64,000 bases of DNA from Bugula neritina (Eukaryota; Animalia; Bryozoa). Below are positions 28,535 through 43,610 of the stretch, piece after piece. The stretch covers positions 9,724,722-9,788,721 of the forward strand of contig OZ037766.1 in the NCBI GenBank assembly GCA_964035545.1, written 5' to 3'. Position 1 is the stretch's first letter, and each line of letters starts with the position of its first letter. The position numbers and the translations under genes were made by a program. The notes under the pieces were generated by a model. It made no database searches. It was not told where the DNA came from and saw nothing but the letters and a program-made list of their open reading frames with translations.

Positions 28535-28892
28535 AGATTAATCTAAAGTTTTGCATCAATTATAACCACTTTGTGTAAATTGCTACCCACAATAAATTTC
28601 TGGTGGTTTCCATCAGACAAAGACACAGAGAGATGATCACAAACCTCATGAAGGCCATAATTATCATCCCCATTGGTTGCTGACTGTTCAGCTTTTATTA
28701 GCAAAAGTGGTGATGTCAGTCTACCAGCTGGAATGTATGAGTCAGCAGCTACATGCTTCTGGTAGAAAGATAACGCTGCTTTTTCAATATCTTGTCTGTC
28801 ATACTTTTGGCCTCTTTTATTGCGTGTAACATTTGACTAACGGCTTTGAGCTTTTCATCCAATGTCTTACATTCTGTTAGAACTTGACGAGT
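28535..28892 (-). pseudogene. Degenerate terminal thioesterase exon of FAS copy 1
   Basis: Homologous to 48860-49216, but with a 1-bp deletion near 28820 (ATG-11nt-AAAAGAGG vs ATG-12nt-AAAAGAGG), an altered or deleted end near 28560, and no upstream TE exons. Confidence 0.88.
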
Positions 28893-29296
28893 CTATAAAT
28901 TGAAACGGCAAAAAAGGCTATATTCTACAATAAGTATGCATAATGTACAAAGGTTTGCTCTAGATTCAGTATAATGTATGCTGCTCACTTCATCTCCATT
29001 ACATGTTCATAAAATATGAGAGTCAACATGATAAAGCTAACATTGAGCGTTCCTTGTAGTGTACAACGGGAAATGGAGTATATTGTATTATATTTCAGCA
29101 TAGGAATATTATGTAGATTATTAGAAAACTGAGCTTTTTAGTATTTGAGACCAGAAAATTAGCTCAAACAGCATTTATCATGTCAAATTCAATGACAGCT
29201 TTCAACAGTTTTATTATAGTACACTGTAAATTATAGTTTTATAGTAGGCCTATACAAAACACAATGTTTGCACAACACCACGACTTTTGAAATTTC

Positions 29297-41200: not shown

Positions 41201-43610
41201 CATTTTATGGCCCATGAAAAGTGTTAACAAACAATATCTACATAAAGTAAGAAACCCATTCACTTGTAGGTATTGCGTTATCAGTTGTGCATCATAATTA
41301 TGTCCACAAATACTTATCCTGCCTAAATCTATGTGGCTTAAACAATCTTAATATACTCTGCAATTAATGCATTGTTATTAACAGTCAAAATTAAAATATT
41401 TTTAGTATGCTAGATAAGACTTTCCTCCGAAAGCAAAAATAATTATTATAATGCAACATAGTCTCGCATTGGACAACTATAAGTAGACCAATTAGCCACG
41501 CCAATACTGGTAAGTTAACAAGTCAGTGATACACTTACTTTTATTGTCTTCCTTTGCTCCATCTGAATTGTTTTTAGAGTGTATAAGCTGTGCATACACT
41601 CTCTTAGACTCTTTGTGTTTTTGTAGAAAAACAGCCACAATTCCTTCACTTCTTGCATAGCCATTGCCTAAACCAGGTCATAGCAGTGTTTATTAAAATA
41701 GTAAGTAACATAAATTAGTTATGACATCAAAAATATGTGTCTTTTTTAATATCATAGAATGTTCAGTCATGTTTCATTTATTTGTATTACCTGATTCATC
41801 AAATGACTTGCAAGCTCCTTCAGGCGACAGCATGTGGAGTTTATTATACTGTATAGAAGTGGCTGGTTTTATGCAAAGATTACACCCTGATACGAGGGCT
41901 GCGTCACACTGCCCCGTGCGAATTGCCAGTAGAGCTTGATCCATGGCCAGTAAACTGGAAGAGCAAGCTGCATCCATAACAAAACTGGGTCCTAAAAATA
42001 AACCAATTGGCACAATTATGTTGCAAGTTTTGCGCCTAAACTTATAAAATATATTTCTTTATTTGTATGTATGTAGAATTTAGACAATATTGAAAGCTTT
42101 TCCTTTGTTAAATTACCTTTCAAGTCAAAAAAATAAGACAACTGATTTGCAACCATTCCCCTCTCGCATCCAATCAAAGAAAAACCACAAGTTGTAGAAG
42201 GGTGAGCAGTCCAGCTATCAGCAGCCTCTCCAGACATTAAACCCACAAATACCCCAGTATTACTTCCTCTTAATGATTCTGGGTTTACACCTGCAGGTAC
42301 ACGTCTTCAAAATAATTAATATTATCTGATGCAAATATATAATATGGTTTTTATGACTAGCAAGAGACAAAATTACTAGCTTAAATAACAATGAAATATA
42401 TTCTTACGAGATATTTAATAATACTGATATTACTCCATGCTACACTGAGTCAATGTGTCATGGAGTGATGCTAAACCAATACCTAGAAACTGCTCATTAT
42501 ACCTTTTCAAACAACTAGACTCTATAGCTTGTGGAAAAAAAGTTTTAACTTATATTTTCTCACACCACAAGAGCATTTCAGCTTCTACAGGTTTTAATAC
42601 TAATACTAGCAGACAGATACTATTTTACCTGCATCCACTATAGCTTCATGGGAAACCTCTAACAGCATTCTTAGCTGAGGATCCATTCTGTTAGCCTGCT
42701 TTTCATGAACACCAAAATATGTTGCATCAAATTTACTCAAGTCTTTAAGTTTGCCAGACCTGGTAGGAAGCCCATGGACGCCTACAAAGTGCTTGGTAAT
42801 ACAAGTAGGCATGGCTTACATTGGTTGTGGATTTGTAAATGTCTAATAAATTAATGGCATGCTATGTGTGTTTCTTATACAATTAAGAATTTTAATATGA
42901 AAAAGATAAAAATCACAAAAGCCTTTCCAAGAAATTGCTATGTGAATATCACTAAAAACAGACAAGCCAATGTAAGATGTCTAAGTTTAAGCTGTTAGAC
43001 TGTTTAGCTTAATTTTTGCAAAAGCTGTTTTACACAGCGTCTTCTATTAATGACTTTTAAAAATTTCTATAAAACTGATAAACTAAAAGCATATGATGTA
43101 GCATGTGCCTTTGACAAAAACTATAATACTAATTTTCAAGTAACACCATTAAAAGAAGCAGAGACCATCCTAATTATAATACTAAGTAAGAAATCGTTAC
43201 TCATGTATATATAGGTTCAGGTCTACATCAGCACAAGGAATGTTATAAAAAGTTTAAGAATAATGTTGGTATTACCAGGAGTCCACCTTCTGCCATCATC
43301 AGTTACCATATCATCATTGTTCATCAAATGATCACGGAATTCATCTACACTATCAGATTCTGGTAGTCTGCATGACATTCCTGAGATGACCACATCTCCT
43401 TTAAACTCTCTAAAATTTTGATAGAAATAATATTATTACATGAAGGGAACTGCCCTATGATCTTGTATTTCTCAATATAACATTTATTGTAAGTTACCTT
43501 CGCCATTGAGCCGTCTGTATAAGACCTGTTGAAGCATCTACACTAACAGCAGCTGGTCTTTCATCTTCACCATCAACTGGATGTAACTCAGCAGCATTGT
43601 TATCTTCCAT
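29297..43610 (-). CDS. Type I FAS-like megasynthase copy 1: KS-AT-DH-pseudoMT/pseudoKR-ER-KR-ACP, thioesterase-less
   Basis: About 31 phase-compatible exons, no stop or frameshift found by eye. [13 protein letters not shown] (43409-43276); [29 protein letters not shown]; AT GHSAGE, AYWRG, AFHS; [15 protein letters not shown] and LDTMLQ; [17 protein letters not shown]; [17 protein letters not shown]; ACP GLDSL. Ends at TGA 29297 (read-through) or TAA 28867 (if spliced to the relic exon). The start ATG at 43610 is tentative; an upstream exon is possible. Confidence 0.88.
38732..40030. mobile_element. Non-autonomous TIR DNA transposon (~1.3 kb), probably Tc1/mariner-pogo type, in a FAS copy 1 intron
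   Basis: Termini TAGGGGTAAC..(G)n..CACAA and TTGTGCCCCCTCCGTTACCCCTA, flanked by TA on both sides; TIR-like internal motifs near 39107 and 39810; no ORF. The superfamily is inferred from the TA flanks only. Confidence 0.78.

Follow-up and report, generated by a model that had tools for sequence, protein, structure and literature searches.

The gene at 28318..43646 on the minus strand of the window (the whole stretch of 64,000 nucleotides of Bugula neritina DNA that was analysed), hereafter copy 1, is on balance best read as a tandem paralogue of the bryozoan cytosolic type I fatty acid synthase (FAS) that lost its thioesterase (TE) through a 1.1-kb deletion and has been kept under purifying selection since. 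Judged from its sequence, it is probably functional as a release-less synthase. It belongs to a tandem cluster of three FAS genes in Bugula neritina, only part of which is covered by the window: copy 2 extends past its end, and copy 3 is located wholly outside it. Copies 2 and 3 are complete FAS genes of 2,514 aa each. Copy 1 is 94-96% identical to copy 2 in DNA, introns counted, and 96.3% identical in protein, and the 1.4 kb upstream of it are 96% identical to the copy 2 counterpart. Identity to animal FAS proteins is 41-48% across ~2,100 residues (48% to vertebrate FAS). Outside the cluster, no type I ketosynthase (KS) was found in the genome except for one match on contig C5.

The gene was delimited by spliced alignment to the animal FAS proteins P0048, P0076 and P0074, while the start codon and exon 1 were read directly. 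From the ATG to the donor of the acyl carrier protein (ACP) exon at 29335 it has 31 phase-compatible coding exons with 6,703 nt. The earlier note had counted about 31 open exons; the alignment gives exactly 31, with AG/GT at all splice sites. The features, all on the minus strand unless the junction is meant, are as follows.

43646: start codon ATG of copy 1
43646-43498: exon 1
40496..43409: exons 2-8 (43409-43276, 42781-42629, 42290-42117, 41991-41791, 41667-41539, 41145-40915, 40722-40496), ketosynthase, from PF00109, PF02801, PF16197 and the translation
40285-40070: exon 9
36207..38656: exons 10-14 (38656-38426, 37863-37674, 36953-36724, 36628-36494, 36373-36207), malonyl/acetyl transferase (AT), from PF00698 and the motifs GHSAGE and VAFHS
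35004..36093: exons 15-18 (36093-35825, 35730-35614, 35516-35262, 35183-35004), dehydratase (DH) with its motif, from PF14765 and the translation
32772..34546: exons 19-22 (34546-33825, 33741-33558, 33278-33098, 32914-32772), pseudo-methyltransferase and pseudo-ketoreductase, from matches to FAS structures in the PDB and PF21149
31126..32502: exons 23-26 (32502-32305, 32166-31856, 31694-31436, 31349-31126), enoyl reductase (ER) with its motif retained, from PF13602, PF00107 and the translation
29745..30953: exons 27-30 (30953-30770, 30639-30488, 30350-30104, 29987-29745), ketoreductase (KR), from PF08659, with GGLGGFG and SNYGYAN retained
29601-29335: exon 31, ACP (LGLDSLM) and post-ACP linker, from PF00550
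28893..29334: composite last intron
28903..28925: deletion junction, equivalent to copy 2 49227-50334 with 1,108 bp missing, from blastn and three-way alignment
28546..28892: what is left of the final TE exon (3' limit ~28546), out of frame after exon skipping
28323-28318: poly(A) signal AATAAA
48890..50864: counterpart region of copy 2, all exons open, with the ACP exon at 50864-50598
50309-50086, 49662-49402 (GYSFG) and 49216-~48890 (GNH): TE exons of copy 2

In the spliced protein-to-DNA alignment of three animal FAS proteins neither a stop nor a frameshift was found between 43646 and 29335, and the hidden frameshifts that would have spoken against an open assembly line from KS to ACP did not appear. 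Exon lengths and AG|GT borders are identical to those of copies 2 and 3 in all 31 exons. Moreover, spliced transcript contigs from an orthologous gene confirm the exon borders between 33823 and 29335; these include the joint from the exon 20 donor at 33558 to 33278, and one transcript piece stops exactly at 29335, where exon 31 has the phase 1 donor G|GTATGT. A 57-nt stretch at 33446-33390, which one reference alignment had proposed as an exon, was dropped, since a transcript joins 33559 to 33281 and the spacing of residues in other FAS proteins also speaks against it.

The family and structure searches were run exon by exon. In this form Pfam recognised KS, KS C-terminal, AT, DH, pseudo-KR, ER, KR and PP-binding domains, in agreement with the catalytic motifs for KS, AT, DH, ER, KR and ACP that can be read in the translation, as the earlier note had described. 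Copy 1 therefore has the KS, malonyl/acetyl transferase, DH, ER, KR and ACP of a FASN, with catalytic motifs and in FAS order. The ketosynthase carries DAACSSS, EAHGTGT and KSNMGHPE at its active site. For the transferase, the top matches among solved structures were animal FAS with 84 bits and EcPKS1 with 77 bits, and its motif region is the same in copies 1 and 2. The sole notable change in the reductive loop or the transferase is S1925L in the KR cofactor motif LILT(S)RSG, which is unique to copy 1.

At the 3' end, copies 1 and 2 are separated by a single large gap (28902/28926 against 49226/50335). This 1,108-bp deletion, first estimated at ~1.1 kb, takes the counterparts of the copy 2 exons 50309-50086 and 49662-49402, i.e. 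the first two TE exons. Two exons had indeed been reported as lost, but the nucleophile motif GYSFG, which had been placed in both, lies in the second of them only. In the remaining TE exon one base is absent between 28819 and 28820, which bears out the reported 1-bp frameshift, and ~6 nt are lost near the former stop. The composite last intron joins the 5' portion of the former ACP-TE intron to the last 10 nt of the intron that preceded the final TE exon. With a splice from 29335 to 28892, translation would end at a TAA in the remnant (28869-28867), giving the C-terminus ..NLDSSSSNRM; retention of the composite intron would lead to a stop at 29299-29297. Both C-termini predicted earlier, spliced or intron retained, were reproduced, among them the C-terminal peptide ...SDSVNLDSSSSNRM. 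The poly(A) signal is kept downstream as described. PF00975 matched copies 2 and 3 in the genome and gave no match in copy 1, which thus lacks the C-terminal TE of a FASN. Damage is confined to the TE, as had been proposed, since the frame from KS to ACP is free of stops, frameshifts and indels. The 6,703 nt hold no disabling mutation, and the TE deletion might or might not count as one. That deletion and frameshift are assembly errors is highly improbable: near-identical tandem copies collapse easily, but copy 1 differs from the other copies by 14-25% at its 3' end and so is not collapsible there, and DNA contigs of run X17, which was treated as independent and may derive from the assembly's own individual, agree with copy 1 base for base to either side of the junction (28201-28649 and 29079-29483), without a break or loose end there.

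The substitution pattern supports purifying selection on the KS-to-ACP frame in copy 1's own lineage. Polarised by outgroups, the changes derived in copy 1 comprise 38 synonymous and 35 nonsynonymous ones (omega ~0.27, binomial p ~3e-8 against neutrality). For copy 2 the counts are 36 and 30 (omega 0.24) and for copy 3 35 and 14 (omega 0.12); compared directly, copies 1 and 2 give a dN/dS of 0.19. The earlier note had named a dN/dS near 1 in non-converted exons as evidence against function; the values here are well below 1. A neutral copy is expected to show ~3.4 nonsynonymous changes per synonymous one, against 0.9:1 in copy 1. Moreover, none of the 43 residues unique to copy 1 falls on the 356 positions invariant among five animal FAS, where 6.9 were expected. 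Between copies 1 and 2, the introns have diverged by 5.7% and carry 42 indel events over 7.5 kb, whereas the exons differ by 3.1% with zero indels in 6.7 kb; on one neutral lineage ~19 exon indels would be expected. Introns 26 and 30 show 22-27% copy-1-derived change against 1-3% in the abutting exons, and the level changes abruptly at the splice sites, which also favours constraint on the exons. Neither an omega of ~1 nor the intron-like indels of a pseudogene are therefore found in copy 1. The TE remnant, in contrast to the upstream exons, appears to evolve near-neutrally, with 20 copy-1-derived substitutions in ~327 nt (6 synonymous, 14 nonsynonymous) plus indels, although the contrast in the ratio of nonsynonymous to synonymous changes is marginal (Fisher p 0.07). 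Its substitution density (~6%) exceeds that of upstream synonymous sites (2.5%), which makes TE inactivation older than most of the constrained upstream changes.

However, the three-copy cluster is clearly a mosaic that pervasive gene conversion has produced, which the earlier note had not recognised. The synonymous divergence in exons is 5-7%, far below the 22-27% in the flanking old introns, which points to homogenisation limited to exons. Even the centre of the copy 1 TE remnant appears converted. Conversion could have repaired copy 1 and imported variants that had already been filtered in other copies, and this weakens the argument from omega.

Therefore, a dying duplicate has to be considered, killed by the TE deletion, with its frame still open because little time has passed or because copies 2 and 3 converted it; the low omega would then reflect its past life as a full FAS or imported variants. 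We regard this as a possible but less probable explanation. Besides the mosaic and the exon-limited homogenisation, it would agree with an omega in copy 1 (0.27) twice that of copy 3 (0.12), and with the lack of transcript evidence and of an obvious release partner. Nevertheless, erasure by conversion is blind to whether a change is synonymous, so the unique changes of a neutral copy should stay near ~3.4 to 1, which is not the ratio observed. The avoidance of invariant positions by the unique residues also speaks against decay, as do the absence of indels and stops in 6.7 kb, compared with at least two indel events and ~6% derived change in the 0.33-kb remnant, and an omega that equals that of the TE-bearing copy 2. 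The earlier note had likewise preferred a selected synthase to a young pseudogene held open by conversion, and the pseudogene fits these data less well even though conversion is rampant. Copy 1, if silent, would be an ordinary decaying duplicate.

The RNA data bear on a related lineage. Three RNA runs aligned to the region gave a single transcript form, which is TE-bearing and matches the lineage of the assembly GCA_010799875.2 at 38 of 40 diagnostic sites; the runs thus belong to a sibling lineage and not to that of the assembly. None of the indexed RNA runs holds more than 10% of the words of the stretch, and the frameshifted remnant ORF had no match in other samples by word search. Two exact-pattern scans of metagenome contigs, for the junction and for a conserved stretch of the final TE exon, returned nothing. 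In GCA_010799875.2, contig L005 holds a TE-bearing C-terminal half only and its downstream synteny breaks; it may be the orthologue of copy 1, 2 or 3. Two JGI contigs, L007 and L008, are orthologues of copy 3 that end before the 3' end.

A selected TE-less synthase would be transcribed from a promoter region duplicated together with copy 2. Its ACP exon would be spliced to the remnant exon, so that the stop falls within the last exon and the protein has ~2,242 aa. This protein may dimerise like FAS and assemble a fully reduced acyl chain, bound to its own ACP. As the reducing domains look intact, spontaneous pyrone release as in the FAS-like polyketide synthases (AFPKs) of molluscs is not expected and the chain would need another way of off-loading. 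A separate hydrolase or acyltransferase might take it off, or the transferase domain might transfer it back, and the product pool or chain length would then differ from that of the TE-bearing copies. Against this reading, older biochemical work indicates that a fully reducing FAS deprived of its TE stalls once a single chain has been built on the enzyme. Nor did the PF00975 profile reveal a discrete thioesterase in the genome: besides copies 2 and 3 it matched only contig C20, where a fragment of a PPME1-like hydrolase is interrupted by stops. Besides, a thioesterase II homologue was not detected in this genome, and between 20000 and 28500, downstream of copy 1, no ORF suggests a release domain. 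Pairing of copy 1 with its TE-bearing neighbour, which had been put forward, is speculation; according to mutant-complementation work, ACP and TE of animal FAS cooperate within one subunit only. Copy 1 may instead be expressed but not autonomous, as a heterodimer partner of copy 2 or 3 subunits with a regulatory or dominant-negative role. With 96% protein identity to copy 2 the dimer interfaces should match, and constraint on the whole protein would also suit a structural partner. We consider this improbable, since a mere partner is not expected to keep every catalytic motif.

To our knowledge, animal FAS has been described as always bearing its own thioesterase. Copy 1 keeps the domain order of canonical animal FASN (PDB 2vz8, 8vf7), i.e. 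KS-MAT-DH-pseudoME-pseudoKR-ER-KR-ACP, with all catalytic motifs, but differs from it in lacking the TE. In FAS this domain largely sets the C16 chain length (PMC13303079). The TE-less AFPKs of molluscs (mo-clades 1-3; EcPKS1 and EcPKS2, PDB 9cq1, 9ctl) are likewise FAS-derived and end in the ACP, and copy 1 shares the absence of the TE with them. For most AFPK members the off-loading mechanism is not known (PMC10764717), and AFPKs have an inactive ER and release their products as pyrones (PMC11831141). They are known from molluscs and arthropods, and Bryozoa are absent from one survey (PMC10764717). In contrast to these old, divergent clades, copy 1 shares 96% identity with a normal FAS, and its KS exons show 98-100% nucleotide identity to the TE-bearing copy 2, from which we judge that it falls outside the AFPK clades. 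The ER, KR and DH motifs of copy 1 are intact, so the altered reductive loop or extender use of AFPKs is not seen. Since KR, DH and ER look intact, the polyketide pathway that the earlier note had suggested is unlikely. The catalytic domains also give no sign of the neofunctionalisation it had proposed, the protein being 96.3% identical to copy 2 and without a unique change at an invariant position.

The origin of the mollusc AFPKs, the known TE-less relatives, has been reconstructed from phylogeny alone. If the reading as a selected synthase is true, a constrained TE-less copy 96% identical to the neighbouring FAS would be a natural experiment on a fully reducing FAS without release in cis, and on the start of specialised lipid or polyketide synthases. 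It is rather doubtful, though conceivable, that copy 1 represents an early step from FAS towards a specialised FAS-like enzyme, still fully reducing and maintained by selection, which passes its ACP-bound chains straight to an acyltransferase or hydrolase dedicated to them. If so, bryozoans would have a separate pool of lipids of unusual length, and AFPK-like enzymes could arise by losing the TE before their catalytic domains diverge. In either case the cluster illustrates how gene conversion in tandem megasynthases confounds the distinction between gene and pseudogene.

TE-deleted or proteolytically trimmed mammalian FAS supplied with thioesterase II in trans likewise has a fully reducing core that lacks a TE in cis, and it needs a discrete hydrolase for turnover; unlike copy 1, it is an experimental or tissue-specific case. 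A further protein similar to copy 1 is XP_077491843.1 of Amblyomma americanum (P0064, 2,236 aa), known as a gene prediction only and 42% identical to copy 1, which runs from KS to ACP with the ER motif region and without a TE.

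Self-comparison of the window and the 40 kb fetched past its end revealed three tandem type I FAS genes, all on the minus strand, together with short inverted KS fragments.

Features of the cluster from the self-comparison (positions above 64000 continue the window coordinates)
43646-28318, minus strand, copy 1
~67803 (beyond the window end) to ~48890, minus strand, copy 2
~89785-76180 (G000:C2 ~9800900-9814500; L002-L003, the copy 3 locus), minus strand, copy 3
22866-25302, plus strand, short inverted KS fragments
44780-45099, short inverted KS fragment
68939-69258 (beyond the window), short inverted KS fragment

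The closest database protein is Bugula neritina KAF6037824.1 (P0001). Genome-wide, PF00109 matched only the FAS cluster and one place on another contig, and PF00975 only copies 2 and 3 and one unrelated fragment. Therefore, the housekeeping FAS of the animal is included in the three-gene cluster. The inverted fragments are partial copies of FAS KS exons 3-6; the piece at 24034-25344 retains the active-site Cys motif and an open frame, and stops occur in the other pieces. Probably they were left behind by an inverted duplication located where each repeat unit ends.

Gene models were obtained with a protein-to-DNA dynamic program written for the purpose, which allowed GT/AG introns, frameshift states and stop penalties and used vertebrate, centipede and tick FAS as references. 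In the spliced alignment to these three proteins copy 1 showed zero stops and zero frameshifts from KS to ACP, and frameshifts were forced only past 29335. The model comprises 31 coding exons and 6,703 nt, including a 5' exon with ATG, in line with the ~31 open, phase-compatible exons with catalytic motifs described in the earlier note; the hidden frameshifts considered there did not emerge. Every copy 1 exon equals its counterpart in copies 2 and 3 in length and AG|GT borders, all domains were recognized by Pfam in an exon-by-exon search, and the catalytic motifs are legible directly in the translation. Moreover, 12 of the 13 introns in 33823-29335 were confirmed by transcript contigs of an orthologous gene, which stop precisely at the ACP exon donor (29335). 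A 57-nt exon candidate was spurious and was dropped. With the same method copies 2 and 3 are complete proteins of 2,514 aa each.

A three-way alignment of the 3' ends confirmed the TE deletion reported earlier: copy 1 has no equivalent of copy 2 49227-50334, which holds the TE exons 50309-50086 and 49662-49402 (GYSFG), while the ACP exon donor and the last-TE-exon acceptor are both kept. The reported 1-bp frameshift lies between 28819 and 28820, where a base present in the other copies, the outgroup and the transcripts is gone; the same exon is also about six bases short near the former stop. Splicing of 29335 to 28892 shifts the phase and is predicted to give a protein of ~2,242 aa ending in ...NLDSSSSNRM* (stop 28869-28867), and retention of the last intron the end ...[14 protein letters not shown]; both termini had been proposed. 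AATAAA is retained at 28323-28318, within the poly(A) signal region noted earlier. The deletion is very unlikely to be an assembly error: contigs of the DNA run X17 match copy 1 exactly on either side of the junction, with no loose end there. The earlier observation holds in every element.

By its pattern of similarity the cluster is a mosaic produced by conversion. Over exons 1-11 copies 1 and 2 pair as sisters (dS 0.06) and copy 3 is distant (dS 0.30), with barely alignable introns and strongly diverged exons 4, 5 and 11. The central part of the gene is similar in all three copies. From intron 26 onwards, 3' UTR included, copies 2, 3 and the outgroup L005 (a TE-bearing contig from GCA_010799875.2) are near-identical and copy 1 represents the old lineage. 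Copy-1-derived change reaches 22-27% in introns 26 and 30 and ~25% in the 3' UTR, against 1-3% in the exons that lie between these introns, with a sharp step at the splice sites. Copy 3 is compact with an intact TE. Most of its exons share 94-99% identity with copies 1 and 2, compared with 72-85% for KS exons 4-5 and the AT active-site exon 11. These diverged exons may reflect a difference in the substrate pocket upheld against gene conversion. Intron 8 of copy 2 contains a 2.9-kb insertion (61594-64000, continuing to ~64468), which lies ~20 bp before the acceptor of exon 9 and might impair splicing of copy 2. The inserted element is young and high-copy, has long terminal inverted repeats and occurs genome-wide in at least 40 near-full copies at 95-99% identity. 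Because of it, the KS exons of copy 2 can be mistaken for a stand-alone ketosynthase.

The ratio of dN to dS between the copies, suggested earlier as a check, was 0.19 for copies 1-2 and the same for copies 2-3. To separate out the changes on the lineage of copy 1 itself, single-site changes were polarised against outgroups. Copy 3 served in exons 1-6, L007 (a contig from a JGI metagenome, collinear at 91% with copy 3) in exons 7-23 and the C-terminal half L005 in exons 19-31.

Derived changes per copy
Copy 1: 38 synonymous, 35 nonsynonymous, omega ~0.27
Copy 2: 36 synonymous, 30 nonsynonymous, omega ~0.24
Copy 3: 35 synonymous, 14 nonsynonymous, omega ~0.12 (lowest)

The neutral expectation is ~3.4 nonsynonymous changes per synonymous one, and all three copies are far from it (copy 1, p = 3e-8); copy 1 is thus not near an omega of 1. 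All 43 copy-1-unique residues lie outside the 356 positions that are invariant across five animal FAS proteins (6.9 expected on them, p ~6e-4), and copies 1 and 2 differ by 42 indel events in 7.5 kb of introns versus 0 in 6.7 kb of exons. The TE remnant, the last TE exon of copy 1, carries 20 copy-1-derived substitutions in ~327 nt (6 synonymous, 14 nonsynonymous) and 2-3 indel events. Its derived density (~6%) exceeds that of upstream synonymous sites (2.5%); we infer that loss of the TE function preceded most of the constrained changes upstream and that selection continued afterwards. The N:S contrast between remnant and upstream exons is marginal alone (p 0.07). L005 falls with copies 2 and 3 over the 3' third, so some copy-1-derived changes there may sit on the stem of that group; with half of the changes from a functional stem and a neutral copy 1, 66% nonsynonymous would be expected versus the 46-48% observed. 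Conversion importing pre-filtered variants later lost by the donor should account for a minority, because two conversion events per site are needed.

Copy 1 is a complete module for condensation and full reduction, with the ACP at its end and no release domain in cis. The enzyme would assemble a saturated acyl-ACP, whose release would depend on a hydrolase or acyltransferase acting in trans, or on its own transferase domain. FAS mutant-complementation work makes heterodimer rescue by the TE of the neighbour doubtful. No discrete thioesterase was found genome-wide with the PF00975 profile, whose sole non-FAS match is a protein phosphatase methylesterase-like alpha/beta-hydrolase fragment interrupted by in-frame stops (L006, G000:C20, 4226-4600; contig of 12 kb), and no extra domain was found downstream of copy 1. 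Pyrone release, used by TE-less mollusc AFPKs owing to an inactive ER (PMC11831141), is closed to copy 1. At codon 1925 in exon 27 (30881-30879), which belongs to the LILT(S)RSG cofactor loop of the KR, copy 1 has a unique Ser to Leu change where reference FAS proteins have Ser or Ala. This could weaken NADPH binding, in which case beta-keto products and self-release become possible.

Copy 1 does not descend from the animal FAS-like PKSs (AFPKs), as its KS and the copy 2 KS are near-identical. On sequence grounds copy 1 is a FAS that falls short in the TE. A tick prediction (P0064, Amblyomma americanum) likewise stops after the ACP. Bryozoa are absent from the AFPK account in PMC10764717.

In a search of indexed runs no RNA run contained more than 10% of the words of the stretch. 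Three RNA runs from three studies (X1, X2, X9) each gave one transcript form. Between 28894 and 29335 it contains 483 letters, the two TE exons, and it also has the base missing from copy 1; none of the runs yielded a second form lacking the TE. At diagnostic sites this form equals L005 at 38/40 and not copy 1, 2 or 3. The runs therefore stem from a sibling lineage and are uninformative on copy 1 expression in the present genome. They share the organism name with the DNA run, yet they agree with GCA_010799875.2, the older B. neritina assembly, and not with the present genome (window 28201-34200, L005). Together with the ~9% difference between the orthologous introns of copy 3 and L007, this match indicates that the present assembly represents a different cryptic lineage within the B. 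neritina species complex, a mismatch that restricts the usefulness of public RNA data genome-wide. In L007, the copy 3 orthologue, exon 14 (~2447-2624) is 178 nt instead of 167 nt, a frameshift that may be an assembly error or mark a broken copy in that lineage.
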